Shown here: piece by piece, positions 5,103-47,113 of the stretch
Layout of the letters: each line of letters begins with the position of its first letter
Position numbering within the stretch: the first letter of the stretch is position 1
Assembly: GCF_000737315.1 (NCBI RefSeq)
Contig: NZ_JMCB01000004.1
Location: 476,314 to 540,313, forward strand
Direction of reading: 5' to 3'
DNA from: Hyalangium minutum
Lineage (GTDB): Bacteria; Myxococcota; Myxococcia; Myxococcales; Myxococcaceae
Length of the DNA stretch: 64,000 nt
Translations under genes and position numbers: made by a program
The notes under the pieces: generated by a model
Told to the model about the DNA's origin: nothing
The model's database searches: none
Seen by the model: the letters and a program-made list of their open reading frames with translations, nothing else

Positions 5103-6632
5103 ATGACCCAGCCAGACAAGCTCACCGAGGTTTTCGAGAAACTGCACGGGCCCGCTGGGCTGGAGTCGCGGCTCCAAGAGCGCAACGAGACGCCTCTGAT
5201 CTGGGCCGTGAGCGAGGGGTATCACGACATCGCGCTGACCTTGATCGAGGCCGGTGCCGACCTGAACGCGCAGAACACCGACGGCAACACGGCGTTGCTC
5301 CGGGCCGCCTGCGAGAATCGCGCGGAGCTCGCCAGCGTCTTGATCAAGGTGGGCGCGAAGCTCGACGTCCAGAACAACGACGGGTACTCCGCGCTCATCC
5401 TCGCGCGGCGCCGGGGCAACAGGGAGATCGTCGACAGCTTGCAGGCGGCAGGAGCGGATCCGAGCCTGGTCACGCGACTCGGGACGACCTTCGACAACCC
5501 GGGCGATTCGCGGAAGACTTCGCTCGAGGGCCGCCGCGATGCGGTTCTGGAGAAGAAGATCATCGACGCCATCTCGAAGTGCCGCGACGGAAGGATGGCG
5601 GGCAGGGAGCTCGAAAAGTACGTCAACCTGAATCCCGAGGACCGGTTCGTACCGACCTCCGTCCTTCGCCGCGCCTACGTCCGCTACGACGGGTCCCACA
5701 ATCCCTCGGCGCCCAATTACGTGCTCCTCGACGATGACATGGAGCTCGGCATCGTCTCGAGCGCCGTTCCCGAAATCGCGCGCGCAGTCTCCTCGCTGCT
5801 CAGCCGCTCACTCGAGGACGCGCGCAACGACCGCGAGGGCCATTTGCCCGCGGCGGTCGTCAGGCGCGTGCAACTCGAGATCATCTCGCCGTACGGCGTC
5901 GCGCATATCTGGGGCGTCACGGGCCATCGGTTCGTGCTGTCGCGGCGCGTGAGTCCCGATCGAAGCGAGCTCCTCGCGACCATCCTCGTCGGACGGAGCA
6001 AGGACACGGTGTTCTTCTTCACCGGCCGTTACAACAATCTGAGGCACTCGACGATCCGCGAGACCGTCGACTTCGACCAGCCCGACGGCGACGATCCCGC
6101 GCACAAGTGGTTCGACAGGTTCGCCTTCCCCGAGATCAGTCGCTTCAAACCGAAGGGCTACCACCACATCGCGAACTTCGTTGTCTGCAAGGAGGAGCGC
6201 GGGCGCAAGCTCGCCCAGTTCGTGCTCGACAAGATCGTGGAGAAGTACGCTCGCGACCACCTCGACAAGCACCAGCGCGCCGTCGAGCACTCGCAGCACC
6301 TGCTGTGCGGTAAGGGCTTCTGGCAGATCGGCGACCCGCCCTGGCTCCCGCGCATGGAGAAGCTCGGCTTCCGCCTGCGGTTGGGCGCCGAGAGCTTCTT
6401 CATCGAGCACGACTGGGCCCGCTTGCCCGCGATCTTCGACCGAAAGACCGGCGAGCCGATCTCCAACGTGGCCTACAACAAGTTCTACGGGCTCCCGCAG
6501 CGATATCAGAGCTGGAAGCCGACGGGAGACACCTCCGAGTCCCTTCTCGATCGGGTGCCCGAGGTGATCCGGCTGTCGCAGGACCCCAAGGCCAAACTGC
6601 AATACTTCCAAGCCATGTTCGACTTCGTATGA
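5103..6632 (+). CDS. Ankyrin-repeat protein with C-terminal GNAT-like acyltransferase domain
   Basis: Three ankyrin repeats (ETPLIWA, GNTALLRA, GYSALILA). HIANFVVCKEERGRKLAQFVL resembles the GNAT acetyl-CoA-binding motif A, and RMEKLGF resembles motif B. An in-frame upstream ATG exists at 4950. Confidence 0.65.
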   Translation: MTQPDKLTEVFEKLHGPAGLESRLQERNETPLIWAVSEGYHDIALTLIEAGADLNAQNTDGNTALLRAACENRAELASVLIKVGAKLDVQNNDGYSALILARRRGNREIVDSLQAAGADPSLVTRLGTTFDNPGDSRKTSLEGRRDAVLEKKIIDAISKCRDGRMAGRELEKYVNLNPEDRFVPTSVLRRAYVRYDGSHNPSAPNYVLLDDDMELGIVSSAVPEIARAVSSLLSRSLEDARNDREGHLPAAVVRRVQLEIISPYGVAHIWGVTGHRFVLSRRVSPDRSELLATILVGRSKDTVFFFTGRYNNLRHSTIRETVDFDQPDGDDPAHKWFDRFAFPEISRFKPKGYHHIANFVVCKEERGRKLAQFVLDKIVEKYARDHLDKHQRAVEHSQHLLCGKGFWQIGDPPWLPRMEKLGFRLRLGAESFFIEHDWARLPAIFDRKTGEPISNVAYNKFYGLPQRYQSWKPTGDTSESLLDRVPEVIRLSQDPKAKLQYFQAMFDFV

Positions 6633-32987: not shown

Positions 32988-33269
32988 GGTGTCGTTGCCT
33001 TCCGTCTCTCAGGTCTCTCTGTCTGGATCGAGTTCTCCCCTCCTCGGTGTGATGTGGGACAGACCGTCCAGCCCGGAGGATGCGTGCGCACCCTGAGTGC
33101 TGCTTGCTCGGCTTCGCGCGCGGCGCAGGGAGGGCCGGGCTTCCGCTTGCTCATGAGGCTGCTGGATCAGCCGTGCGGGGCCAGGCGCGTTGCTTACCCT
33201 CCCCACGGTTCCTAACGTGTGTCGGAGGCGCTGCGCCCGAGGGGACCACGCGTTCCGAAAGGCGGGGAG

Positions 33270-36200
33270 ATGCGTCCAGACGAAGAGCATTCGGACGAGC
33301 AGGCGCACGGCGAGGAGGCCGTGTGGGACGAGGCTGACGACGCCGACCTCGATGACTCCTTGTTGGCTCAGGTAGCCCAGGTCTCCGTTCCACTGCGAGT
33401 CCCATTCCGGGGCGAGCACCTGGGAGGGCAGGACGGGCAGCGCTTCGAGATCCTGGATCAGCTGGGGGGTGGCGCGATGGGCCTGGTGTTCCGGGCCCGG
33501 GACAAGGAGCTTCAGCGCGTGGTGGCGCTCAAGTTCCTGCTCCCGCGCGAGGGGCTGGGCGAGCTGCCCATGAGCTCCCTGCTGCGGCAGGAGGCGAGGG
33601 CCGTGGCGCAGCTCGACCACGAGAACATTGTCCGGATCTTCGACGTGTCCGAGTGGAGCGGGGCGTCATGGGAGCCCAGGATTCCCTTCCTGGTGATGGA
33701 GTGCCTGGAGGGGGAGTGCCTGTCCGCCCTGTTGCTGCAGGAGCACCCTTCGCTGCCGCGCACCCTGGAGATCATGGCCGCTGTGGCGGCGGGACTCGGC
33801 CACGCGCATGAGCACCACATCGTCCACCGGGACCTCAAGCCGGGGAACGTCTTCATCACCCAGAAGGGGCAGGTGAAGATCCTGGACTTCGGGCTCGCGT
33901 GGCTCACCGCGGCCGTCTTCCCAGCGGCGCCCAACTTCCCCGCGGCAGGGACGCCCAGCTACATGGCTCCAGAGCAATGGCGGGGAGAGGCGCAGGACGA
34001 GCGCACGGACATCTGGGCTGCCGGGGTCATGCTGTACGAGCTGCTCGCGGGTGTTCCTCCTTATATAGAGACGAGCCTGGCGGAGCTGAGGGCGCGGGTG
34101 CTCTCCGATGCACCGGTGCCGCGCCTGAGCGAGCGGCGGCCTGGGCTGCCCGAGGAGCTGGAGAAGCTGGTGGCCTCCATGCTGGCGAAGACTCCCCGGG
34201 AGCGGCTCTCCAGCGCCGCCGAGCTCCGGGAGCGCCTGCGCCGCATCGAGGAGGGCCTTACGCCGTGGCGGGACGAGCCTCGGAGCCTGGCGCCGCAGCG
34301 CCGCCAGGTGACGCTGGTGTCGTGCTGGCTGGCCGATCTGGCGGGGCTGGCCGAGCACCTGGATGCGGAGGACTTTGGCGAACTGGAAGGTGCCTTCCAC
34401 CAGTCCTTCTCGGAGATCATCCAGCAGCACGAGGGCTCCATCACCACGTGCATGGGGGACGAGGCGCTTGCGTGCTTCGGCTATCCCCAGGCGCGCGAGG
34501 AGGACCCGGAGAAGGCAGCTCGCGCGGGACTCTTTCTCGCCACGCACCTGGGCACAGCCATCCAGCAGAAGCTGCCGTACCTCCCGCGCCGAAAGCTCAC
34601 CGTGAAGGTGGGGGTGCACACGGACACGGTGGTGCTGGACAACCTCCCCGTGGAGCTGCGCGGACGCACTCCCGCGCTCCAGGGCGAGGCGCCGAAGATC
34701 GCACTCTGGCTGGCCCATGAGGCGGCGCCCGACACGGTGTGCCTCAGCCACACCACGTGGAAGCTCGTCCGAGGCGGCTTCCGCACCGAGCCGCTCGGCC
34801 CCCGGTTCTTCCAGGGGCTGGCGGGGATGGCGAAGCTAGACGTGCACCGCCTGCTGAGGGAGCAGCGCACCACGAGCCGCTTCGAGCGCACCCATGCCCA
34901 GGGACCCCTCACGCCGCTGGTGGGCCGCGAGCCCGAGCTGCACCAGTTGCTCGAGAGCTGGGAGCGCGCTTGCATGGGCCAGGGCGCGTTCGTCCTCGTC
35001 CGAGGCGAGGCGGGAATCGGCAAGTCCCGGCTCATTCAGGAGCTGCGCGAGCGGGTTCCTCAGGACAGCGTCATCCGCCTGCGCTGCCAGTGCTGGGTGC
35101 AGTTCCGCACGAGCGCCTTCGCCCCCATCATCGAGCTGCTCCAGCACTTGCTGCGGCTCGAGTCCGAGGGCAGCCCGCAGGCGAACCTGCGCAAGGTGGA
35201 GGGGCGCATGCGGGCGGCGGGCCTGCCGCCGGAGCACGTGTTCCTGGTGGCGAGTCTCCTCTCGCTGCCCGTGGCCGAGGCGCCACCTCACCTCCGGCTC
35301 AGCCCGGAGCTGCTGAAGGAGAAGACGCTGGAGGCGCTCGCGACGCTGCTGCAGCGGATGACCGAGGAGCGTCCCGTCTTTGCCATCGTCGAGGATCTCC
35401 ACTGGGCGGATCCTTCGACGCTGGAGCTGCTGGGCTACCTGCTGGCCCGGATCGAGAAATGGCGGCTCTGCGTCTTCCTTACCGCCCGCCGCGGCTTCGA
35501 GCCCACCTGGCCTGGGAAGGAGAAGATCCAGGTCCTCACGCTGGAGCGCCTGTCGCCCGCGCTCACCGCGGAGCTGGTGCGTCAGTCCGCCAGTGGGAAG
35601 GCGCTCTCCGAGGAGACCATCGAGCAGCTCGCGGCCAAGACGGACGGCGTGCCGCTCTTCGTGGAAGAGATGACGCACATGGTGCTGGAGAAGGGCTCCA
35701 CGGGCAGCACCTCGGCGGAGCCGTTCTCCATTCCTCTCACGCTGGGAGGGCTCTTGCTGGCCCGCCTGGACAAGTTGCCCCGGCGGCAGAAGGCGCTGGC
35801 CCAGCTCTGCGCCGTGGTGGGCCGGGGCTTCAGCCATGCGCTGCTCGCCACGCTCTCAGGGAGGAACGAGGCAGCGCTCGGGCAGGACCTGAGCGGGTTG
35901 CTGCAGGCGGGCCTCTTGCAGTCGGTGGAGGAGGGCCCCGAGTCTCGGTACCAGTTCCGCCACGCGCTCATCCAGGACGCGGCCTACCAATCCCTGCTGC
36001 GGCGTACGCGGCGCGAGTACCACCGGCGCATCGCCCAGGTGATGGCCGCGCAGTTCCCGGAGCTGGCCGACAGCCAGCCGGAGATGCTCGCCCACCATTA
36101 TACGGAGGCGGGGGAGGTGGAGCCGGCCATCCACTTCTGGGCCAAGGCGGGCCTGCGCGCCAGCGTGCGTTCGGCGAACGTGGAGGCGATCAGCCACCTC

Positions 36201-37334
36201 AACCAGGCGCTCCGATTGCTGCGCAGCCTGCCCGAGGCCTCGCGCCGCCCGGAGCAGGAGCTGGAGCTGCAGGTGGCCCTGGGCCTTCCGTTGATGCAGA
36301 CGCGCAGCATCCGCTCCCGCGAGGTGGAACAGACTTACAGCCGGGCCTTCGAGCTGTTCCACCAGGTGGGCGACGGGCTGACGCGCGTGCAAGCCTCGAC
36401 GTGGGGCTCCTTCGCCTACTCCTTCATGCGCGCCCGGTTCCAGCTGGGGCAGGAGCTGGCCGAGTTGCTCGCGAGCCTGGGCGAGCGCCAGCAGAGCCGG
36501 GAGATGCTCTCGCTGGGCCACCGGATGATGGCCACCAACTTCTTCACCTGGGGGCAGATGACCACGGCCTTGGAGCACGTCGAGCTCGCGCTGAAATACT
36601 CGGACTTCGGGCTCGAGCAGCACCGCGAGCTCGCGGTGAAGCAGTGGGTCAACCCGCGGGTGGCCGCGCTGGCCTATGGCTCCGTCGTCCAATCCGCCCT
36701 GGGCAATATGGAGCAGGCTCGGCGCTGGAGCTCCGAGGCTCTGGTGCTCGCCGAGGAGATTGGCCATCACCACACGCTGGCGCTGGCGCTGACCTACACC
36801 GCACTGGCGTGCCAGCTCCGAGGGGAGCTGGAGTGCGCCCGGGAACGCGCGGAGCGGTGCATCGCGCTCTCCACCGAGCACCGCTTCCGCCTGTGGCTGG
36901 GCTGGTCCGTCTTCATCAAGAGCTGGGTCCTGTCCGAGCAGGGCTCCCCGCGCGAAGGGCTGGCGCTGCTGCGCGCCAACCTCGCGAGGTGGCGCAACGC
37001 GGGAGTCAAGGTGGGCATGCCGCTCTTCCTCGGCATGCTCGCGGAGTACCACATGAAGTTGGGGGAGTACTCGCAGGGGCTGGCGGCCGTGACCCAGGCG
37101 CTCGGGTGGGCGGATGCGTTGGGGGAGCGCTCGTACGAGTCGGAGCTGTACCGGATCGAGGGCGAGCTGCTCCAGGCGCTCGGCTACGGCTCAGCGGCGG
37201 CGACAGCGTTCCTGCACGGGATGGAGGTGGCGGAGCGGCAGGGGGCGCACGGGTTCCGCAGACACGTGGAGGCGGCGCTCGAGCGTCAGCTCCAAGGGGG
37301 GGCGGGCGAGCTGCCACTGTTCGCCCCGCCTTAG
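33270..37334 (+). CDS. Ser/Thr kinase + degenerate class III cyclase + STAND AAA ATPase + TPR protein (copy 2)
   Basis: GGGAMG, VALK, HRDLKPGN, DFG, GTPSYMAPE; RRQVTLVSCWL...GDEALACFGYP; GEAGIGKSRL, VEDLHWAD. Colinear with copy 1. Alternative GTG start at 33219. Confidence 0.9.
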   Translation: MRPDEEHSDEQAHGEEAVWDEADDADLDDSLLAQVAQVSVPLRVPFRGEHLGGQDGQRFEILDQLGGGAMGLVFRARDKELQRVVALKFLLPREGLGELPMSSLLRQEARAVAQLDHENIVRIFDVSEWSGASWEPRIPFLVMECLEGECLSALLLQEHPSLPRTLEIMAAVAAGLGHAHEHHIVHRDLKPGNVFITQKGQVKILDFGLAWLTAAVFPAAPNFPAAGTPSYMAPEQWRGEAQDERTDIWAAGVMLYELLAGVPPYIETSLAELRARVLSDAPVPRLSERRPGLPEELEKLVASMLAKTPRERLSSAAELRERLRRIEEGLTPWRDEPRSLAPQRRQVTLVSCWLADLAGLAEHLDAEDFGELEGAFHQSFSEIIQQHEGSITTCMGDEALACFGYPQAREEDPEKAARAGLFLATHLGTAIQQKLPYLPRRKLTVKVGVHTDTVVLDNLPVELRGRTPALQGEAPKIALWLAHEAAPDTVCLSHTTWKLVRGGFRTEPLGPRFFQGLAGMAKLDVHRLLREQRTTSRFERTHAQGPLTPLVGREPELHQLLESWERACMGQGAFVLVRGEAGIGKSRLIQELRERVPQDSVIRLRCQCWVQFRTSAFAPIIELLQHLLRLESEGSPQANLRKVEGRMRAAGLPPEHVFLVASLLSLPVAEAPPHLRLSPELLKEKTLEALATLLQRMTEERPVFAIVEDLHWADPSTLELLGYLLARIEKWRLCVFLTARRGFEPTWPGKEKIQVLTLERLSPALTAELVRQSASGKALSEETIEQLAAKTDGVPLFVEEMTHMVLEKGSTGSTSAEPFSIPLTLGGLLLARLDKLPRRQKALAQLCAVVGRGFSHALLATLSGRNEAALGQDLSGLLQAGLLQSVEEGPESRYQFRHALIQDAAYQSLLRRTRREYHRRIAQVMAAQFPELADSQPEMLAHHYTEAGEVEPAIHFWAKAGLRASVRSANVEAISHLNQALRLLRSLPEASRRPEQELELQVALGLPLMQTRSIRSREVEQTYSRAFELFHQVGDGLTRVQASTWGSFAYSFMRARFQLGQELAELLASLGERQQSREMLSLGHRMMATNFFTWGQMTTALEHVELALKYSDFGLEQHRELAVKQWVNPRVAALAYGSVVQSALGNMEQARRWSSEALVLAEEIGHHHTLALALTYTALACQLRGELECARERAERCIALSTEHRFRLWLGWSVFIKSWVLSEQGSPREGLALLRANLARWRNAGVKVGMPLFLGMLAEYHMKLGEYSQGLAAVTQALGWADALGERSYESELYRIEGELLQALGYGSAAATAFLHGMEVAERQGAHGFRRHVEAALERQLQGGAGELPLFAPP

Positions 37335-37403
37335 GCATCACATCGGCGGGGCCGGAGCTCCACCCGCTGGGGCGCAAGCCAGAGACAGTCAGGGGACGAG
37401 ACG

Positions 37404-38027
37404 ATGGCGACCGATCGAGAGAAGCTGGAGCAGGAGATCCGGGAGTTGAGCCAGCGGGGGGACACTGGCGGAGCGGTGGAGCGTGCGCTGCAGGGCTACG
37501 GGATGGAGATCATGCGGCTGATGGCCTCCGTTCTGCACAACCCCGAGCTGGCCAAGGACGCGTTCAGCCTCTTCTGCGAGAACCTCTTGAAGGGCTTGCC
37601 GTCCTTCCGCTGGGAGAGCTCCTTCCGAACGTGGGCGTACCGGCTGGCGCGGAACTCCTGTTACCAGTTGGCGCACGCTCCCTCGGCGCGAGAGACGCCG
37701 GTGAGCTCCTCGGGGATTCCGGACGCGGCGCTTCGCCAGCGCTCCGACACGCGCCCCTGGCAGCGGACCTCGGTGAAGGAGCGCTTCCGGGCGCTGCGCG
37801 AGAGCCTCGAGCCCGAGGATCGCATGCTGCTGCTGCTGCGAGTGGATCAGCGGCTGGCGTGGACGGAGGTGGCACGCATCATGTGGGACTCGGACGAGCC
37901 GATGACGAGTGCGGCCCTGTCGCGCAAGGCCACGGCACTGCGCCAGCAGTTCCAGCGCATCAAGACCCACCTGCGGCAGATGGCCACCGAGCAGGGGCTG
38001 CTCGAACAGGATCAGCCGCCGGTGTGA
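37404..38027 (+). CDS. ECF-type RNA polymerase sigma factor
   Basis: Sigma-2 FRWESSFRTWAYRLARN; sigma-4 LRESLEPEDRMLLLLR...WTEVARIM. Confidence 0.8.
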   Translation: MATDREKLEQEIRELSQRGDTGGAVERALQGYGMEIMRLMASVLHNPELAKDAFSLFCENLLKGLPSFRWESSFRTWAYRLARNSCYQLAHAPSARETPVSSSGIPDAALRQRSDTRPWQRTSVKERFRALRESLEPEDRMLLLLRVDQRLAWTEVARIMWDSDEPMTSAALSRKATALRQQFQRIKTHLRQMATEQGLLEQDQPPV

Positions 38028-39140: not shown

Positions 39141-39860
39141 TCACGGCCGCTTCGTGGCGACGACGACGCTGTAGGGCGTGAAGGGCGGAGGCATCAGCCC
39201 ATCGCGCACGTCCACGTCGAACCCCCGGGCCTCCAGCAGCTCGCGGGCGCGGGGCACCAGGAACGTCAGGTAGTACATGACGAAGGGCGGCTTCCAGAGC
39301 GCGTTGCGCACGCGCATTGCCGCGTTGAAGCCCTTGGCCAGCCAGTAGCCCGGGTTCCACGCCGACGGTGGATGCCCCGTGACGAAGACGAAGCGGCCCC
39401 CGGGCCGCAACGCGCGGGTGAGCACGTCCGCCAGCCGTGGCTCGTCCTCCTCCAGGATGTGCCCGAAGGCCCCGAAGCTCGTCACCACGTCGAACTCGGC
39501 CTCATACGTCAGCTTCAGGGCATCGCTCTGGACCAGGGTGATCTTCGCGTCGCCCGGTGCGTCCGCCAGCCGCTGACGCGCCTCGTCGAGCATCCCCCGG
39601 CTCAAGTCAACGCCCACCACCTCCTGGCGGCACAGCGGCCGCAGGAAGCGCATCGCCGCTCCCGTGCCACAGCACAAGTCGAGCGCGCGATCGATGCGGC
39701 CCGGAGCGCCCACCTGCTCCATTGCCACCTTCAGCACCGCATCTGGCGTGCGGAACGGCGTGTACTCGAACTTCGGCGCGAGCAGATCGTATCCGTGCTC
39801 CACGGACGAGAGTGCCTGCTGCGCCAGCTCCAGAAACGTCGGGCCCTTGCGATGGAACAT
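39141..39860 (-). CDS. Class I SAM-dependent methyltransferase
   Basis: ALDLCCGTG, VGVDLSRGML, QSDAL, ALRPGGRF. Confidence 0.88.
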   Translation of the reverse strand: MFHRKGPTFLELAQQALSSVEHGYDLLAPKFEYTPFRTPDAVLKVAMEQVGAPGRIDRALDLCCGTGAAMRFLRPLCRQEVVGVDLSRGMLDEARQRLADAPGDAKITLVQSDALKLTYEAEFDVVTSFGAFGHILEEDEPRLADVLTRALRPGGRFVFVTGHPPSAWNPGYWLAKGFNAAMRVRNALWKPPFVMYYLTFLVPRARELLEARGFDVDVRDGLMPPPFTPYSVVVATKRP

Positions 39861-39904: not shown

Positions 39905-40954
39905 ATGTCAAACAGAAATACCTGGTGGAGCGCCGCCGCGCTTGGCCTGACCGTGGTGGCTGGCTGTGGCCCGGAGGACGAGACGCTGGACTTGCTGCTG
40001 TCCGCCAAGCAGGGGCTGGTCGCGGGATGCACCGCCTCCGGTGTGGATGCCGATGCCGACGGCCTGGATGACGGAGACGAGGACTGTCTCCTCCAGCGCC
40101 ACGCGCCCGTGGTCAACCTCCCGTGGACGATCGACTGGACGAAGCCCGCCAACGTGGACTGGTACCTGGCTCGCGTCCACATGCGCTTCACCCATGACGG
40201 CTGCTCCGACTGCCAGATCCTCAATGTGGGCAGCGTGAACCAGACCAGCATCACCAACCGGACCCACAACGACAAGAACTGGCTGTGCTCGCACACCAGC
40301 ACGGCCCGCTACTCGTACGGCACGGACTGGAACGACAGCGAGCACTTCTTCCTCCAGCCGCCGGATGATGCCGTCCACAACGGCAGCTCCAACTCCGCCG
40401 ACTGGAAGGTCTACGGCCACGTCTACAAGAACGCCTACGGGGGCGTGAACCTCCAGTACTGGTTCTTCTTCCCGTACAACGATGCGCAGCTCTCCTTCAA
40501 CCACGAGTCCGACTGGGAGCACGTCAACGTGCGCCTGAATCCGGACTACTCGGTGGCGGGAGTCCACTTCGCGCACCACAGCAATGTCACCTACTACGCC
40601 AAGGCCAGCGTGCAGTGGTTCGACAGCACGCACCCGCTGGTGTGGACGGCGGACGGCAGCCACGCCAGCTACGTCTCCGAGTCCGTGTGTGACTCCACCA
40701 TCGAGGAGGTGGGCTGGGGCTCCAGCAGCTGCGAGACGAACGCGAACTATCGCTGGTTCACGTGGGCGGGAGGGAAGGGCACCCTGGTGGGTCTCCAGGG
40801 CGGAGGCATCATCAACGTGGGCGAGAAGACCCGGCCGCTCAATGGGCAGAACTTCATCAAGTACAACTCGCGGTGGGGCGAGATTGGTGAAACGAGCATC
40901 ACCTCGGGTGTGCGGGGGCCCTCTTTCCAGGGCAACTGGACCCGAGACATGTGA
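39905..40954 (+). CDS. Lipoprotein with Vps62/NPP1-like domain
   Basis: Lipobox VVAGC; acidic DADADGLDDGDE; LQYWFFFPYND...HESDWEHVNVRL...HPLVWTADGSHASY. Confidence 0.7.
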   Translation: MSNRNTWWSAAALGLTVVAGCGPEDETLDLLLSAKQGLVAGCTASGVDADADGLDDGDEDCLLQRHAPVVNLPWTIDWTKPANVDWYLARVHMRFTHDGCSDCQILNVGSVNQTSITNRTHNDKNWLCSHTSTARYSYGTDWNDSEHFFLQPPDDAVHNGSSNSADWKVYGHVYKNAYGGVNLQYWFFFPYNDAQLSFNHESDWEHVNVRLNPDYSVAGVHFAHHSNVTYYAKASVQWFDSTHPLVWTADGSHASYVSESVCDSTIEEVGWGSSSCETNANYRWFTWAGGKGTLVGLQGGGIINVGEKTRPLNGQNFIKYNSRWGEIGETSITSGVRGPSFQGNWTRDM

Positions 40955-40986
40955 GCGAGGAGGGGAAGCTCGGGTAGGGTAGGGGC

Positions 40987-42639
40987 ATGGCTCCTTCTCC
41001 CGAATCCTGGACGCTGCCCTGGCGAGGGCTCGGCCTGAGCAGCAACCTCAGCGCCAGCGACCAGCCTCACCCCTACCGGCTGCTCGACGAGGAGCCCGAG
41101 CTCTTCGACTTCGTCGAGTACAGCGCTCCCTTGTCGCTCTCGGAGACGAAGAAGCACGCCACGCTGTTTCCGGAGATGCACCGGCGCCTCCAGGAGGTGC
41201 CGGTGCTCTTCCATCCGGTGCACCTCAACCTCTATGGGCCGGTGCTTGAGTCCCCCGAGGCCCTCGCCGACCTGGACGCGCACGCGCGCACGGTGGGCAG
41301 CCCGTGGGTGGGCAATGACGTGGGCTGGTGGCACTCAGGCGGGCAGCCCTTCCCGGGCTACCTCTACTTCTCGCCACCCCTCACCAATGAGGGACTGCAG
41401 GACTGCGCCGCGCACGCGCTGCACGTCCAGTCGGGACTGAGCCGGCCGCTGGCGCTGGAGAACCCCGCCGTGTTCGCTCGGCGCGGGGACATGCACGTGC
41501 TCGACTTCATGGCGAGGCTGCAGTCGCGCACAGGGCTGCCGCTGCTGCTCGATCTGGGGCACCTCTTCAGCTACCAGCTCTCCGCCGAGCTGCCGTTGGA
41601 GACGGGGCTCGACGGCTTCCCGTTCGATCGCGTCATCGAGATCCACATTGCTGGGGGCGTGGTGACGCGCCGGTGGGTCCGCCGCTTCTATGTGGATGAT
41701 CACACCCAGCCCGTGCGCGAGGAGCTGTTCCAGTTGCTGGAGTGGGTGCTGCCGCGCTGCACCTCGCTGCGCGCAGTCACATTCGAGGGGGACGGGCACC
41801 CGCCCGAGGTGGCATTGCTCACGCTGCGTCGCCTGCGCAACCTGATCCCCAAGCAGCAGCGCGCGCCCCTGCGCCTGACGCCCGTGGAGGCTGTTCCGCC
41901 GCCGCTGAGCAACGTGAGCCGGCCCTGGGAGCTGTTCGACCTGGGGCACGGCGCTCGCCGGGCCGTGGAGTCAGATGACGTGGATGGGACGATCGCCGAG
42001 GTGGACTTCCGCCTCGCGGTGGTGGCCGAGCAGCTCGACAAGGACTTCCCCATCTCGCGCCTGCTGCTGGCGGGCACGCGCGAGGGCCTGCTGGCCTTCA
42101 CCTCCTCGCAGGAGTACCGGGAGCTGTTCGAAGGCTCGGGCCGCTCGTTTGGCCATGCGTTCCTGGACTACGCCCGCAAGCGCCTCCGCGAGCACCCGGA
42201 CGAGGCGGGCGCGGCGGCTGCGGCGCTCTCCTTCGAGACCTTCCTCCCGACGCTGATGCTGCGGCCCATGAATCCTCCCAAGCCTGGAGAGGTGGGGTTG
42301 GTAGAGGACGCGCGAGTGGGCACGTTCCCTGCGGACCTGTCCGAGCTGGTGTACTCGGCCCGGGCGCTGCGCCGTCACCTCACGGGCCGGGCCTGGGCCA
42401 ACGGCACGGTGGAGCTGAGCGGCCTGGAGTCCTTGGCGCAGACAGCCCGGAGGACCGTGTCCCGCCCCTGGCGTTTCGCCGTTCGCCGCAGGCGGGGCGG
42501 AGGCATGGAGGTGCACACGGCGACGCCGGGGCTCTCCGAGCTTTTCCGAGCGCTCACGCAAGGCCCGCTGCCGGAGAAAGACATTGCTCCTCCGTTACTC
42601 GCGGAGGCCCTGGGGCGTGGGCTCGTGCGGCGAGGGTAG
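40987..42639 (+). CDS. DUF692 multinuclear non-heme iron oxidase (MNIO) with ~260-aa C-terminal extension
   Basis: LGLS, FVEY, FHPVHLNL, LALENP, LLLDLGH, IEIHIAGG, VDDHTQPV and TFEGD follow the DUF692 TIM-barrel ligand order. Confidence 0.8.
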   Translation: MAPSPESWTLPWRGLGLSSNLSASDQPHPYRLLDEEPELFDFVEYSAPLSLSETKKHATLFPEMHRRLQEVPVLFHPVHLNLYGPVLESPEALADLDAHARTVGSPWVGNDVGWWHSGGQPFPGYLYFSPPLTNEGLQDCAAHALHVQSGLSRPLALENPAVFARRGDMHVLDFMARLQSRTGLPLLLDLGHLFSYQLSAELPLETGLDGFPFDRVIEIHIAGGVVTRRWVRRFYVDDHTQPVREELFQLLEWVLPRCTSLRAVTFEGDGHPPEVALLTLRRLRNLIPKQQRAPLRLTPVEAVPPPLSNVSRPWELFDLGHGARRAVESDDVDGTIAEVDFRLAVVAEQLDKDFPISRLLLAGTREGLLAFTSSQEYRELFEGSGRSFGHAFLDYARKRLREHPDEAGAAAAALSFETFLPTLMLRPMNPPKPGEVGLVEDARVGTFPADLSELVYSARALRRHLTGRAWANGTVELSGLESLAQTARRTVSRPWRFAVRRRRGGGMEVHTATPGLSELFRALTQGPLPEKDIAPPLLAEALGRGLVRRG

Positions 42640-42651
42640 AGCTCGGCGAGG

Positions 42652-43056
42652 CTACGGGCTCTCGGCCTCAAGCAGCGCCGCGAGGAACAGGGAGTAGGTC
42701 AGCTCGGCCACTGGCCGCTTCTCTCGGCGCGCCTGGGTGCGCAGGGCCTTGGGCAGCGAGCAGGGCTTGCCCTTCTCTGCTTCGCGCAGCTGCACATAGC
42801 CTCGCTCGGAAAACCCGGCGATCTGCCACCCGCGCTGGCGGAGCGCTTGGCTGAGATCATCGGTGAGCTGGTGGTGGAGGGCCTTGGCGAGCGGCAGCGT
42901 GCCAAAGATCTCGCTGTGCCAGCCGCGCGGCTCCTCGCGCCACCCTCGGGCGCGCAGGTAGTGAGCCTTGCGAGCCAACGAGAGCCCGCCGACGTGCCGC
43001 TCCAGCTTCACAGCGCGGAGCGGGTCAGCGGGCCGTCGAAGTTCTGGCCATTGCAC
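42652..43056 (-). CDS. Hypothetical protein
   Basis: 134-aa ORF with plausible composition and an internal repeat (LRARGW / LRQRGW), downstream of yaeQ; start uncertain. Confidence 0.5.
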   Translation of the reverse strand: MQWPELRRPADPLRAVKLERHVGGLSLARKAHYLRARGWREEPRGWHSEIFGTLPLAKALHHQLTDDLSQALRQRGWQIAGFSERGYVQLREAEKGKPCSLPKALRTQARREKRPVAELTYSLFLAALLEAESP

Positions 43057-43559
43057 TCGGCATAGACATGGTCCCCGACGAAGGTCAGCGACACCTTGAG
43101 GCGCCGGGAATCGAAGGAGGAGAGTGCACGCAGGAGCCCGGCGTCAATCGCCGCGAGCTCCGCCTTGGCCACGCGCAGGGCCTTGGCCTCGCGCGCTTCG
43201 GCGATGAACGCCTCGAGCCGTTCGGCCGACTCAAACAGTACCGAGACCTTCGCGTGAGGGTTCTGGTCGACCGCGCGCTGCAGCTTGATGGGGTCCGCCT
43301 TGCCGACCCGGACCCAGCGGGTGACGAGCCCGGTGTAGTCACGGCATTCGAGATCCGGCGCGTCCGGTTCGCCCAGCCCCGGGCCGAAGGTCATCCGCTC
43401 CTCCCACGCCCAGCAGTAGGCGAGCACTCGCAGCCAGAGCCGTTGCATCGTCTCGGAGGGGTGGCGGGCGACCTTGATGCCGATCTGCGGCTGGTCGATG
43501 GAGCGATCCACCTGGCTCAGGCTGATCTGGAAGTCGTACAGCGTCGGAGCGAGGGTCAT
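43008..43559 (-). CDS. yaeQ: YaeQ family protein
   Basis: ARHPSETMQRLWLRVLAYC, FGPGLGEPDAPDL, WVRVG. Confidence 0.85.
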   Translation of the reverse strand: MTLAPTLYDFQISLSQVDRSIDQPQIGIKVARHPSETMQRLWLRVLAYCWAWEERMTFGPGLGEPDAPDLECRDYTGLVTRWVRVGKADPIKLQRAVDQNPHAKVSVLFESAERLEAFIAEAREAKALRVAKAELAAIDAGLLRALSSFDSRRLKVSLTFVGDHVYAECNGQNFDGPLTRSAL

Positions 43560-43647
43560 TGAGGAGTCCCGGTGCCCTCCGTCCGAGGGCCTGCGCGGTA
43601 TAGCCTATCTCCGCGCAGCCTCGAAGGCGGCTGGGCAGGAGGCTCGT

Positions 43648-45084
43648 TTAGGCCCCCCGCGTTACAGCCGAGAGGCTGGCGCGCAACCGCCGGAGTCCCT
43701 CGTCGATGCGGTGGGTGGCGATGGCTCCGTAGCCGAGGACCAGCCCCGGCCGCGCCGGGCGGTGCGCGTAGAAGCCCGACAATGGGTGCAGTCCGACCCC
43801 TGCCACCTTCGCTCTCGCCACCACCTCTCGCTCCAGCTTGGCGCTCGTGTCCTTGAAGGTCGCGCTCAAGTGCAGGCCGGCCACTGAAGGCACCGGCTCC
43901 AGCCATGGGTCGAAGTCGCGGAGCAGGGTGTGGTGGATGCGCTCGTGCCGCGCCTCATATTCGCGCCGCATCTTGCGGATGTGCCGCGCCAGCTGTCCCT
44001 CGTCGATGAAGCGGGCCAGGGCAGCCTGCTCGGGCCACTGACAGTGCCAGTCGCTGAGGTGCTTCGCGGCCCGGAGCGCTGGCTGAAGCGCGGGCGGGGC
44101 GACCAGGTATCCCAGCCGAAGGGCTGGGAGCATCACCTTCGAGAACGAGCCCACGTAGATCACCCGGCCCGAGCGATCCAGACTGTGAAGCGTCTCGAGG
44201 GGGCGGCCACCGAAGCGGAACTCGCTGTCGTAGTCGTCCTCGATCACCACCGCGTTCCGTTGCTCTGCCCAGGCCAGCAGGGCTGTCCGGCGCGCGGGTG
44301 ACATCGCCACTCCCAGCGGGAACTGGTGGGAGGGGGTGACGTAGACGAGCCGGGCCTCCGAGGGGAGCGCGCTGACGTCCAGACCCTCGGCATCCACCGG
44401 GACGCGCACCACCCGCGCACCGAGCGACTGGAAGAGCAGTCCTGGGGGAGGGTAGCCCGGCTCCTCGACGACGACGCACGTTCCTGGATCGATGAGCACG
44501 CGCCCGATCAGATCGAATGCCTGCTGCGCCCCGTGGGTGATGATCACATCCTCGGCGTCCGCCTGGACACCGCGCGCCAGCCCGATGTGCCTCGCCACCG
44601 CCGCACGCAGTGTCGGATGACCCGCAGGCTCTCCGTACTCCGCGCTGAGCACTGCGGCGCGAAGCTGGCGCGCGGAGAAGCGGCGCCAGGTCTCAAAGGG
44701 GAACAACTGTGCGTCGGGCATGCCCGCGCGGAAGTCGTAGGCCGAAGGACCCAAGCGTTCGCGCGGGCCAGGGAGTTCTCTCCAGAGCGCTCGGCTCTGC
44801 AACAGGGCCCCTGCCTTCGCCCGCCTGCGGGGCGAGGCCGGTGGGGGCTCCCCCTGGACGAAGCTGCCCGCACCGGCTTGGCCGGAGACGAGCCCCTCCG
44901 CGATCAGCCACTCGTAGGCGGCGGCCACGGTGTTGCGGGAAACCTCGAGCCGCTGGGCCATCTCGCGGGTCGGTGGCAGCCGGTCGCCCCGGCGGAGCCG
45001 CCCATCGAGGATTGCTGCTCGGACGCCTCTGTAGATCTGGCCCGCCCGATCGCGCCGGCGCTTCAAGTCGATGTGGAGATCCAT
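43648..45084 (-). CDS. MocR/GabR-type GntR regulator with PLP aminotransferase-like domain
   Basis: wHTH LPPTREMAQRLEVSRNTV; YVTPSHQFPLG, IEDDYDSEF, GSFSKVMLPALRLGY. Confidence 0.92.
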   Translation of the reverse strand: MDLHIDLKRRRDRAGQIYRGVRAAILDGRLRRGDRLPPTREMAQRLEVSRNTVAAAYEWLIAEGLVSGQAGAGSFVQGEPPPASPRRRAKAGALLQSRALWRELPGPRERLGPSAYDFRAGMPDAQLFPFETWRRFSARQLRAAVLSAEYGEPAGHPTLRAAVARHIGLARGVQADAEDVIITHGAQQAFDLIGRVLIDPGTCVVVEEPGYPPPGLLFQSLGARVVRVPVDAEGLDVSALPSEARLVYVTPSHQFPLGVAMSPARRTALLAWAEQRNAVVIEDDYDSEFRFGGRPLETLHSLDRSGRVIYVGSFSKVMLPALRLGYLVAPPALQPALRAAKHLSDWHCQWPEQAALARFIDEGQLARHIRKMRREYEARHERIHHTLLRDFDPWLEPVPSVAGLHLSATFKDTSAKLEREVVARAKVAGVGLHPLSGFYAHRPARPGLVLGYGAIATHRIDEGLRRLRASLSAVTRGA

Positions 45085-45186
45085 CCCGCCACAGCCCATA
45101 ACTTGGCCCAGTGAGAATCGTCAAATCTGGCTTTCTACCGGTCCATTGCGGCTGGCACTTTGCGGACCACTCAAGGAGGAAGCCCC

Positions 45187-45642
45187 ATGTCGCAACCTGC
45201 CGCCGTTGGTTCCCGTCCCGTCGATACCGAGCGCATTCCCTGGATCCCGCAGAGCCCCGGCAACTCCTTCAAGCCTCTGCGTTTCTTGCCCGAGGACCGC
45301 GGCTGGGTCCTGCTGCTCCGGCTCGAGCCGGGGACCGCCATCTCCCGGCACCGCCACACGGGCGAGGTGCACGCCTTCAACCTCTCGGGCCAGCGCAAGC
45401 TTCTCGAGACCGGAGAGGTGGTGGGTCCGGGTGGTTACGTCTACGAGCCCGCCAACAACGTCGACAGTTGGATGGCCGTGGGCACCGAGCCAGTGATTGT
45501 CCACATCACCGTGTACGGCGCGGTCGAATACCTCAACGAGCGCGGGGAGATCACCCGGCGCTACACGTCGAGCACGCAGCAGGAGGTGTACCGGAGGTTC
45601 TGCGCCGAGCACGGACTGCCGATGCTCGATCTGACGGCCTGA
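45187..45642 (+). CDS. Cupin (ChrR-like / 2,4'-dihydroxyacetophenone dioxygenase family)
   Basis: RHRHTGEVHAFNLSG...GGYVYEPA; GGAGG RBS; divergent from the MocR regulator. Confidence 0.8.
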   Translation: MSQPAAVGSRPVDTERIPWIPQSPGNSFKPLRFLPEDRGWVLLLRLEPGTAISRHRHTGEVHAFNLSGQRKLLETGEVVGPGGYVYEPANNVDSWMAVGTEPVIVHITVYGAVEYLNERGEITRRYTSSTQQEVYRRFCAEHGLPMLDLTA

Positions 45643-45669
45643 GCCGCACCGGGTGCTCGAGCCACCGCG

Positions 45670-46455
45670 TCACGGCATCGTGGGCCGCACGAAGGGAATG
45701 AATCCGGCGATGAAGTGCACCTGAGGGGATCGGCCGAGCGTCCGCAGCCGGTCATGGGCGATCACCAGCAGGAGCGCGTAGAACCCGCAGGACACGAGGA
45801 TGTGCCACCACGCGTGGAGCTGCGGGTTGGGGATCCCCAGGGAGGGCAGCGTCACGTTGAGCGTGAAGCAGGCGCGCAGGTCGGTGAACCACACTGCGAA
45901 CGCCAGCGCATAGGCGCTCATCCCCAACCGGTAGACGCGCCGGATCGTCCGGTCCTGGTTGCGGCGGTGGATGAAGTAGACGCGGCCCAGCGCGAACAGC
46001 TCCAGCGACGCGAAGCTCGCATGGAAGAGGTAGAACTGAAGGGGGCCGTTCGTGAACGCGTTGAGGCTCGTGATGAGCACCGCGTGTCCGAGCAGCAACA
46101 GGGGAAACCAGTTCCCGAACCGCCGCTCGGGCTTGTTCTCCAGCAGGATGAAGAGGATCACCAGGACCAGCCAAAGCATGGGAACCTCGTCCATCATCTG
46201 GGCCTGGCGGAGGAGCGTCGCGTGGAAGGCGATGCTCCCCAGCCCGACGACGGACACCATGGCGAACGCGAGCATGAAGCGGCGCTCCAGCACGTGGCGG
46301 TGGAGGACGATGCCCAGCACGCCCGCGAACACCATCGCCAGGCTGGAGGCCGAGTTGAACAGCTCACCCACATAATAGAGGTGCTCGTAGTTCGTCTCGC
46401 ACCAGTCCACCGTGGAAGTGGTGGGTCCCCAGAAGCCCGTGGCCGTCTCTTGCAT
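45670..46455 (-). CDS. Alkaline ceramidase (ACER/CREST superfamily), multi-pass membrane hydrolase
   Basis: WGPTTSTVDWCETNY...ELFNSASS, GSIAFHATL, QMMDEVPM, QLHAWWH. Confidence 0.88.
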   Translation of the reverse strand: MQETATGFWGPTTSTVDWCETNYEHLYYVGELFNSASSLAMVFAGVLGIVLHRHVLERRFMLAFAMVSVVGLGSIAFHATLLRQAQMMDEVPMLWLVLVILFILLENKPERRFGNWFPLLLLGHAVLITSLNAFTNGPLQFYLFHASFASLELFALGRVYFIHRRNQDRTIRRVYRLGMSAYALAFAVWFTDLRACFTLNVTLPSLGIPNPQLHAWWHILVSCGFYALLLVIAHDRLRTLGRSPQVHFIAGFIPFVRPTMP

Positions 46456-46609
46456 GACGGCCACAGGCTAGCAGTCCCTCAAGGGGTGGGAGTGCCCTTG
46501 CACACCCCGGCGTCGGCCACGAAGGGCTGCAGGTTTAGCGCCGCACTGTTCTCAGAGCCCCTTTGACAGAAGGTGGGTGACTGGAGAATCTGGGGATTCG
46601 GACGCGCCC

Positions 46610-47113
46610 ATGTGGATCTTCGGCTACGGCTCTCTCATCTTCCGCCCCTCCTTTCCGTATGAAGAGCGCCGCGAGGCGTGGCTGCGGGACTGGAGCCGGC
46701 GCTTCTGGCAGAGCTCCACGGATCACCGGGGCGTGCCGGAAGCTCCGGGACGGGTGGTGACGTTGGTGCCCGAGCCCGGTGCGCGCTGCTGGGGCATGGC
46801 CTACCGGATCGCCTCCGAGCGCGTGGCGGAAGTGCTGACCCACCTGGATTGGCGGGAGCAAGGCGGCTACGAGCGGCACCCCGTGGCGCTGGAGACGCGC
46901 GAAGGGCCCATCCCGCAGGCCGTGGTGTACCTGGCAGGGCCGTCGAACCCTCAATACGTGGGGCCGTTGACGGTAGCGGAGATCGCGGCGGTGGTGCGCT
47001 CCGCTCACGGGCCCAGCGGTTCGAATCGCGAGTACGTGCAGCGGCTGGCCGAGGCCCTGGCCCAAGCCGGTGAGCACGACGCGCACGTGGCGGAGCTGTT
47101 GCGGCTGCTGTAG
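46610..47113 (+). CDS. chaC: ChaC-type gamma-glutamylcyclotransferase
   Basis: WIFGYGSL, RRFWQSSTDHRGVPEAPGRVVTL, LDWREQGGY, GPSGSNREY. Confidence 0.88.
   Translation: MWIFGYGSLIFRPSFPYEERREAWLRDWSRRFWQSSTDHRGVPEAPGRVVTLVPEPGARCWGMAYRIASERVAEVLTHLDWREQGGYERHPVALETREGPIPQAVVYLAGPSNPQYVGPLTVAEIAAVVRSAHGPSGSNREYVQRLAEALAQAGEHDAHVAELLRLL

Follow-up and report, generated by a model that had tools for sequence, protein, structure and literature searches.

The genome of Hyalangium minutum encodes a multinuclear non-heme iron-dependent oxidase (MNIO, DUF692 family) that is fused to a partner module. It is probably (probability of about 0.6) a cytoplasmic, self-sufficient MNIO with a probable promoter of its own, acting on a peptide or protein encoded in trans. 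The gene (40987-42639, + strand) codes for a 550-aa protein, orthologous to MXAN_4160 of Myxococcus xanthus, and is the only MNIO gene in the stretch of 64,000 nucleotides analysed here (contig NZ_JMCB01000004.1, positions 476,314 to 540,313, hereafter the window; G+C content of ~68%). The initial annotation of this DNA, made from the sequence alone, had described a self-contained MNIO paired with a large lipoprotein encoded directly upstream. The first part of this description was upheld, as a DUF692 barrel and a module resembling TglI and DUF2063 proteins are joined in one polypeptide and all nine metal-ligand positions are occupied and conserved; the pairing did not withstand comparison with related genomes. 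The list of unusual peptide chemistries obtained from MNIOs is growing quickly and, to our knowledge, nearly all characterised members were discovered through a neighbouring precursor gene together with a partner protein encoded separately.

Residues 28-278 (41068-41820, +) form an MNIO/DUF692 TIM-barrel domain, assigned to PF05114 (MbnB_TglH_ChrH) with 107 bits for a gathering cut-off of 25 (E 1.3e-30). The nearest solved relatives by sequence are TglH (8HCI; E 1.8e-13 with phmmer), 3BWW, which is a DUF692 protein of Haemophilus somnus, and MbnB. A full-length AlphaFold2 model based on 29 homologues (predicted local distance difference test, pLDDT, 91.4; predicted template modelling score, pTM, 0.88) was compared with solved structures using Foldseek, which retrieved TglH (8hci_B, E 1.2e-12), MbnB (7tcr_A, E 1.9e-10) and 3bww (E 1.1e-9), with template modelling (TM) scores on the target of 0.68-0.79 for the barrel against solved MNIOs. 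Scores against the NCBIfam equivalog models were all below the cut-offs, namely 88.6 bits for BufB (cut-off 310), 85.1 for ApyH (400), 47.3 for HvfB (360) and 33.4 for ChrH (600), and the protein therefore belongs to no named MNIO subfamily. Public databases name the family only as 'DUF692 family multinuclear iron-containing protein', and no publication on the MXAN_4160-type family was found in the literature on MXAN_4160 or on MNIOs in Myxococcus. No signal peptide was found in the fusion protein, which is thus predicted to be cytoplasmic.

In MbnB, the iron ligands are H54, H90 and E133 for Fe1, E133, D163, H192 and E239 for Fe2, and N166, D208 and H210 for Fe3 (PMC9060507). Ligands were assigned in the H. 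minutum protein from this crystal-structure set and from pairwise alignments to TglH, 3BWW and MbnB. The equivalent positions are: (i) H76, D111 and E158 for Fe1 (codons at 41212, 41317 and 41458), (ii) E158, which is shared, with D189, H220 and E267 for Fe2 (codons of the last three at 41551, 41644 and 41785), and (iii) H192, D237 and H239 for Fe3 (codons at 41560, 41695 and 41701), all on the + strand. Seven of the nine positions carry the same residue as in MbnB (H76, E158, D189, H220, D237, H239 and E267). Two are exchanged: H90 of MbnB corresponds to D111 at Fe1, within a G-N-D motif (109-111), and N166 corresponds to H192 at Fe3, within a D-L-G-H motif (189-192). Both exchanges had already been picked out in the initial annotation as deviations from the usual DUF692 pattern, and both were found where it had reported them. 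Judging from the sequence, D111 and H192 are ligand-competent substitutions, since both residues are able to ligate metal. When the nine positions were checked for missing ligands, all proved to be occupied, and none of the nine columns varies among 29 homologues with identities down to 52%; the predicted metal site has therefore been kept by selection and has not decayed. These observations bear on the idea that the protein is a catalytically dead or repurposed MNIO acting as a scaffold or regulator. In its favour are the departures from the canonical SDH/SEH and D-x-x-N motifs, the lack of an adjacent substrate gene and a winged-helix-like C-terminus; the NGO1945 structure 3dee was deposited as a putative transcription regulator. 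However, the two substituted residues are good metal ligands, the ligand set is invariant and NGO1945-type proteins are now regarded as MNIO partners (PMC12452194), so that a dead enzyme is hardly credible.

The barrel is followed by a Pro-rich and poorly conserved linker (residues ~286-312; 41842-41922, +), which falls in variable alignment columns (~301-330) and has one short strand as its sole regular secondary structure in the model. Two subdomains then make up the C-terminal module. The first (residues ~313-423; 41923-42255, +) is helical, resembles the DUF2063-like helical part of TglI and NGO1945, and contains the motifs DFRLAVVAE, DFPISRLLLAG (at 353) and LSFETFL (at 414), of which the last two had been reported previously and are present. 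The second (residues ~435-549; 42289-42633, +) is an alpha/beta subdomain in which the model places a beta-hairpin, two helices, two strands, two helices and one strand, i.e. the order of elements of a winged helix or of a recognition element of ribosomally synthesised and post-translationally modified peptides (RRE and RiPP, respectively), in agreement with the winged-helix-like ending that had been proposed. Distant family members (458-484 aa) end after the beta-strands and do not have the last helices of this subdomain.

Sequence searches with the C-terminal part gave no assignment: residues 280-550 matched no Pfam family at E<=10 and no NCBIfam model, PF09836 (DUF2063) was absent from these residues and from the precomputed domains of every homologue, and a hidden Markov model profile of 21 C-terminal domains matched nothing at E<=10 among all PDB sequences. 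A profile search of a set of 5.8 billion proteins reached no stand-alone DUF2063 proteins. Because the full-length fold search was swamped by TIM barrels, residues 285-550 were modelled alone (pLDDT 83) and compared with 350,542 PDB chains using Foldseek. The top match was TglI (8hi7_A, E 1.5e-3, probability 1.0, 269 aligned columns), the other two of the top three being TglI in 8hci_A and the NGO1945/DUF2063 structure 3dee (E 1.8e-2, probability 0.97); the next match had an E-value of 0.37 and a probability of 0.11. The TM scores against TglI and 3dee are 0.32-0.42 with identities of 10-14%; such modest scores are expected for two-subdomain proteins that differ in hinge angle, and the likeness stays weak. 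As the only significant PDB matches of the C-terminal model are the MNIO partners TglI and NGO1945, the protein is an MNIO fused to a TglI/DUF2063-like partner module. The earlier assignment of the extension as DUF2063- or RRE-like is thus retained at the level of the fold, where TglI and 3dee are the top matches, and is not backed by Pfam or PDB profiles. Judged by the pTM of the full-length model, the inter-domain arrangement is predicted with confidence, and the module probably packs against the barrel. Partners described as PME-type 2 have no DUF2063 signature and are structurally similar to NGO1945 and TglI (PMC12452194, Leprevost et al. 2025). The module shows the fold used to recognise them on structural grounds, a helical domain and then one of the RRE type, and is fused in cis, whereas PME-type 2 partners are encoded by a separate gene and form a heterodimer with their enzyme.

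The best matches of the MNIO are in Hyalangium (86% identity to H. gracile), and those next in rank come from Stigmatella, Archangium, Cystobacter, Pyxidicoccus, Corallococcus and Myxococcus. Full-length orthologues (52-98% identity) occur across the Myxococcaceae, every genus returned by the homology search has the gene, and the fusion gene is inherited vertically in this lineage. When the C-terminal domain was compared exhaustively by phmmer with 1.84 billion representative proteins, 47 relatives were returned, essentially all of them fusions (440-570 aa) or fragments. The two candidate split forms on metagenome contigs (P0312 and P0244, adjacent open reading frame (ORF) pairs) were rejected, as they look like frameshifted fusions in their context. 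Fusion is therefore the normal state of the MXAN_4160-type family. On the metagenome contigs, barrel and partner module are seen as two adjacent ORFs (L055:3242-4909 and L056:831-2735); this arrangement is probably a frameshift that arose from assembly or early pseudogenisation, and not a natural split form.

The gene upstream of the MNIO gene, on the same strand and separated from it by 32 nt, codes for a Vps62/NLP-like lipoprotein (39905-40954, +). The initial annotation had given it as a 349-aa lipoprotein at this distance with seven Cys outside the lipobox, including a CSDC motif, all of which is present, and had taken it as the pairing partner of the enzyme and its possible substrate, the other possibility being a trans-encoded peptide, the kind of substrate favoured here. 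According to the pairing explanation, the MNIO would modify the lipoprotein at CSDC or at other Cys before Sec export, as a two-gene system comparable with bufferins or the DAG-RiPPs. The common orientation, the short gap and the seven Cys speak for it. So does the fact that MNIOs are known to act on precursors with Sec or lipoprotein signals and even on proteins of >30 kDa (PMC12452194, PMC13056109), and the modification of a large protein or lipoprotein, earlier considered unusual, is no longer unprecedented since the description of ChrH, DybH and MelH (PMC13056109). Furthermore, the pair recurs in L001, L002, L004, L005, L008 and L055, and a homologue of the lipoprotein lies near the MNIO in L010.

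However, joint conservation of the two genes, the lack of which had been named beforehand as a refutation of the pairing, was not found. The comparison covered 48 loci with an orthologue of the MNIO, from 42 GTDB species representatives and from metagenome contigs; upstream adjacency was counted in the 44 loci for which 1.3 kb or more was available on the upstream side, and downstream neighbours in 45 loci. The lipoprotein gene lies directly upstream of the MNIO in 4 of the 44, all close Hyalangium-like relatives, and is also found at L002, where the flank is partial, and at L055. In Pyxidicoccus caerfyrddinensis (L010), a homologue with 68% identity is encoded 1.7 kb upstream with a gene for a LysE-type transporter in between. 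No lipoprotein gene is present in L003, L006 and L007, where the methyltransferase gene that otherwise precedes the lipoprotein gene abuts the MNIO gene directly and the MNIO is intact and 82-84% identical. Where the lipoprotein cassette is present, it is flanked by CCGTGTAAYATCCGC, by the start of the methyltransferase gene, and by GGGTAGGGTAGGGGC-ATG, at the start of the MNIO gene; the two are juxtaposed in L006 as a clean indel, and a degenerate CCGTGTAAYATCCGC only is seen in L007. In L003 (H. versicolor), positions 5940-6000, compared with 40930-40986 of the window, retain, between the methyltransferase and the MNIO genes, only the lipoprotein gene's final codons and stop codon with its 3' flank; the gene was therefore deleted there in a recent loss that left the MNIO intact. 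Lipoprotein homologues with 55-67% identity and the same Cys pattern occur in unrelated neighbourhoods that have no MNIO.

The lipoprotein itself has a signal peptide with the lipobox VVAG before C21 (39905-39967, +), an NHESDWEH motif (40499-40522, +) and non-lipobox Cys at 42, 61, 100, 103, 128, 262 and 276, CSDC being residues 100-103. In total, 179 homologues were detected, in Myxococcota, Longimicrobium and others. PF06101 (Vps62) is matched by 17 of the 24 aligned homologues (best E 4e-15), including ones that are 65-66% identical to the window protein, which itself stays under the Pfam reporting thresholds. The family profile weakly matches the NLP structures 3st1 and 3gnu (E 3e-3) around an invariant N-H-E-x-D-W-E-H motif, which resembles the GHRHDWE heptapeptide of the NLP (NPP1) cytolysins. 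Compared with the Vps62/NLP superfamily, the window protein differs in being a bacterial lipoprotein with an Asp-rich N-terminal segment and extra disulfide-type Cys pairs. The seven-Cys pattern is family-wide and the same in homologues that do not adjoin an MNIO. Cys100 and Cys128 are lost together in homologue P0144, and Cys262 and Cys276 are both present or both absent in 24 of 24 aligned sequences; because of this pairwise covariation, the pairs 100/128 and 262/276 look like the structural disulfides expected in an exported protein. In many family members, His or Glu takes the place of the second Cys of CSDC. No CPxCGxG motif is present, the C-terminus reading ...GNWTRDM and CSDC being the only such element, an internal one, and the enzyme is not ChrH-like. 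The homologues P0140, P0141 and P0144 have an extra C-terminal Cys-rich, somatomedin-B-like domain. With the sparse adjacency, the intact MNIO beside a deletion scar, and identical Cys patterns in homologues far from any MNIO, modification of the lipoprotein by the adjacent enzyme is quite improbable. On present evidence, the lipoprotein is not a dedicated substrate; it is an exported, Vps62/NLP-like protein without relation to the enzyme, and its gene, which occupies a variable insertion slot upstream of the MNIO in a few Hyalangium-like genomes, is a dispensable neighbour outside the MNIO system. The protein may be a surface-anchored effector of a predatory bacterium. A common strand and a short gap were thus insufficient to infer an enzyme-substrate pair, and it was comparative genomics that removed the lipoprotein as a candidate.

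Expression of the MNIO can also be considered apart from the lipoprotein. A -10-like hexamer, TAGGGT (40975-40980, +), ends 6 nt before the ATG of the MNIO gene (A40987). In 41 of 49 loci, the corresponding pattern TA[GC]G[GT]T precedes the start codon by 6 nt (rarely 7-9), irrespective of the upstream gene; it reads TAGGGT in Hyalangium and Corallococcus and TACGTT in Myxococcus, and is accompanied by no Shine-Dalgarno sequence. It is missing in the remaining eight, namely four of the five loci linked to a MacB-type efflux operon (L038, L039, L049 and L051) and L027, L036, L050 and L053; the fifth MacB-linked locus, L048, is on the same contig as L051 and was left out of the hexamer scan. A scan for consensus promoters and terminators found no sigma-70 site, and its terminator-like matches were at chance level and inside coding regions. 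The position and conservation of the hexamer suggest that the MNIO gene has its own promoter and a leaderless or near-leaderless mRNA. If so, the MNIO would be expressed independently of the lipoprotein, and the retention of this element further speaks against a two-gene system.

Downstream of the MNIO, the neighbourhood is more constant. In 35 of the 45 loci, a gene of the uridine kinase family (udk, PF00485) begins on the same strand no more than 400 nt further on, typically after 30-40 nt, and the gene for a membrane-anchored protein of ~310 aa comes after udk in 39 of the 45, with a gene for a PQQ-like beta-propeller next to it on the opposite strand. The ~310-aa protein has a conserved RP-x-EEIDPA tail, matches no Pfam family, contains no Cys and shows no evident leader/core layout. 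Even the most distant members keep the order MNIO, udk, ~310-aa protein, with gaps of ~18-40 nt between MNIO and udk, while their upstream neighbours differ (a Leu/Phe-tRNA-protein transferase, an ion channel). In several loci (L017:7671-12616, L051:11761-16736 and L052-L054), the string of genes consists of MNIO, udk, the ~310-aa protein, the PQQ-like beta-propeller and a HARE-HTH/Mrr-like protein. Upstream, in the basal loci L038, L039, L048/L051 and L049, a Yip1-OEP-MFP-ABC-FtsX-FtsX operon (MacB-type efflux) ends 13-60 nt before the MNIO gene, which suggests that the pump and the MNIO were ancestrally co-transcribed; in other lineages, a kinase/sigma-factor pair, the methyltransferase, the lipoprotein or other genes are inserted between the pump remnant and the MNIO. 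The proposed gene order would accordingly read: MacB-type efflux operon or lineage-specific inserts, MNIO, udk, ~310-aa protein, PQQ-like beta-propeller. In the window and in L001, the downstream udk block was lost by rearrangement: the region 42640-47113 contains instead genes for YaeQ, a 134-aa ORF, a MocR-type regulator, a ChrR-like cupin, a ceramidase and ChaC, and no copy of udk or of the ~310-aa gene was found anywhere in the 64-kb window.

This neighbourhood raises the question of whether the enzyme is a RiPP maturase at all. It could have a housekeeping role tied to its downstream neighbours (e.g. by modifying the ~310-aa protein); alternatively, its target could be a small molecule or some product that the MacB-type pump of the basal loci exports. 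Such roles would fit the one-strand gene order that is maintained in the most distant members while the upstream genes change, the position of the MNIO directly after OEP-MFP-ABC-FtsX-FtsX in L038, L039, L048 and L049, and the presence of the gene in every Myxococcaceae genus returned by the search with no precursor beside any locus. Yet synteny within a single lineage can last without a functional link, and here the linkage is broken in the window, L001 and L004, which have neither udk nor the ~310-aa gene, and interrupted in L003, L006, L008 and L053. Moreover, the ~310-aa protein offers neither Cys nor the evident layout of a precursor, and the retention of a recognition module like TglI points to a peptide or a protein as the substrate, although a housekeeping protein could still be that substrate. 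A non-RiPP role of this kind is consequently unlikely, if clearly more plausible than modification of the lipoprotein.

A precursor gene beside the MNIO was not found in any of more than 45 loci, nor was a conserved small ORF. The gaps on either side of the MNIO gene are 12-50 nt in most loci, too short for a precursor gene, and the neighbours across loci are udk, an alpha/beta hydrolase, the MacB-type pump and regulators. Since no precursor gene adjoins the MNIO in any locus, a substrate would have to be encoded elsewhere in the genome. Bufferin precursors that are not linked to MNIO genes have already been documented (PMC12452194). If the enzyme works as TglHI, MbnBC, BufBC and MovX do, its C-terminal module would bind a peptide or an unfolded protein segment and would deliver it to the di- or tri-iron site of the barrel, where an O2-dependent oxidative modification would follow in the cytoplasm. 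The partner module on the same polypeptide would replace a separate partner protein.

Several points weigh against a self-sufficient MNIO acting on a substrate in trans. Modification of a peptide is proposed by analogy. The likeness of the C-terminal module to TglI and DUF2063 proteins comes from modelled structures and is weak, with no sequence profile behind it. We know neither the change from His to Asp at Fe1 nor that from Asn to His at Fe3 from any characterised MNIO, and given these exchanges, the enzyme might differ in metal content and in chemistry. In the window genome, read-through co-transcription with the lipoprotein gene is still compatible with the 32-nt gap and the common strand, and the homologue in L010 indicates that the association may be old and repeatedly lost rather than purely accidental.

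As for the other genes of the window, the divergent neighbour of the lipoprotein gene codes for a class I methyltransferase dependent on S-adenosylmethionine (39141-39860, -; matches to PF13649, E 1e-20, and to PF08241), as had been annotated. Its probable start is M18 of the listed ORF, 44 nt from the ATG of the lipoprotein gene. The methyltransferase was rejected as a tailoring enzyme, since it lies beside the MNIO only in the Hyalangium-like clade (L001, L003-L008 and L055). Downstream of the MNIO gene are a 134-aa ORF with no family match (42652-43056, -), which is 84% conserved in L001, and the YaeQ gene (43008-43559, -). As listed, the 134-aa ORF overlaps the 3' end of YaeQ by 49 nt, and its true start may be further downstream. 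The MocR-type regulator (GntR/aminotransferase), ChrR-like cupin, ceramidase and ChaC genes are farther out on one side of the lipoprotein-MNIO pair. On the other side, farther out, are genes for a nitronate monooxygenase and, upstream of the MNIO region (33219-38027), for a 1371-aa Ser/Thr kinase-AAA_16-TPR protein followed by an extracytoplasmic function (ECF)-type sigma factor. Hyalangium-like genomes, L013 and L027 also encode the kinase and the sigma factor upstream of the MNIO, and the sigma-factor gene directly abuts the MNIO in L013. They were considered as bufferin-like regulators and occur in some lineages only.

The MXAN_4160 type is found in a family of predatory, developmental bacteria, and genome-mining rules based on neighbourhood would miss its substrate. 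Tentatively, it might represent protein-modifying MNIOs outside RiPP clusters, directed at a housekeeping or envelope protein or at a MacB-exported peptide; within this proposal, the syntenic ~310-aa membrane-anchored protein is a candidate target. The identity of the substrate would reveal whether trans-encoded or housekeeping proteins also fall within the reach of MNIO chemistry. With its Asp/His shift, the tri-metal site might allow a chemistry not yet seen in MNIOs.

Among the closest known systems is TglHI of the 3-thiaglutamate pathway of Pseudomonas syringae (8HCI/8HI7). TglH is the best match of the barrel in both sequence and fold and TglI is the best fold match of the C-terminal module, so that the two halves correspond to the TglH-TglI heterodimer. 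Here, in contrast, they form one polypeptide, identities are 22% for the barrel and 14% for the partner, the Fe1 His is replaced by Asp, and neither a TglA-like precursor nor an amino-acid-tRNA-dependent PEARL ligase is encoded near the window MNIO. With regard to BufBC and HvfBC, the NCBIfam model with which the barrel scores best is that of BufB (E 4e-25), though far under its equivalog cut-off. The C-terminal module fits PME-type 2 and not the DUF2063 PME-type 1, and it is fused, whereas the partner of BufBC and HvfBC is encoded downstream; no DUF2282, Buf2 or EGKCG precursor and no DoxX gene was found near the window MNIO. ChrH, DybH and MelH, the MNIOs of DAG-RiPPs, modify precursors bearing lipoprotein signals and proteins of >30 kDa at CPxCGxG (PMC13056109). 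Their substrates are conserved together with their MNIO, whereas such conservation is not seen for the window lipoprotein, which also lacks the motif; ChrH-type enzymes also have a distinct C-terminal helical bundle, and the window MNIO is not of this type (33 bits for a cut-off of 600). The precedent for a self-contained MNIO is MovX, from a methanobactin-like cluster of Vibrio, which works without a separate partner and carries an extra winged-helix domain, RRE-like, in cis (PMC11252979, PMC12452194). By its published description, MovX has the RRE-like domain only and is encoded in a cluster with the precursor MovA, whereas the protein described here has a two-subdomain module of ~240 aa and no adjacent precursor. 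What is new in the MXAN_4160 type is the combination of a full partner fusion, an altered and conserved ligand set, the absence of an adjacent precursor and vertical inheritance throughout the family.

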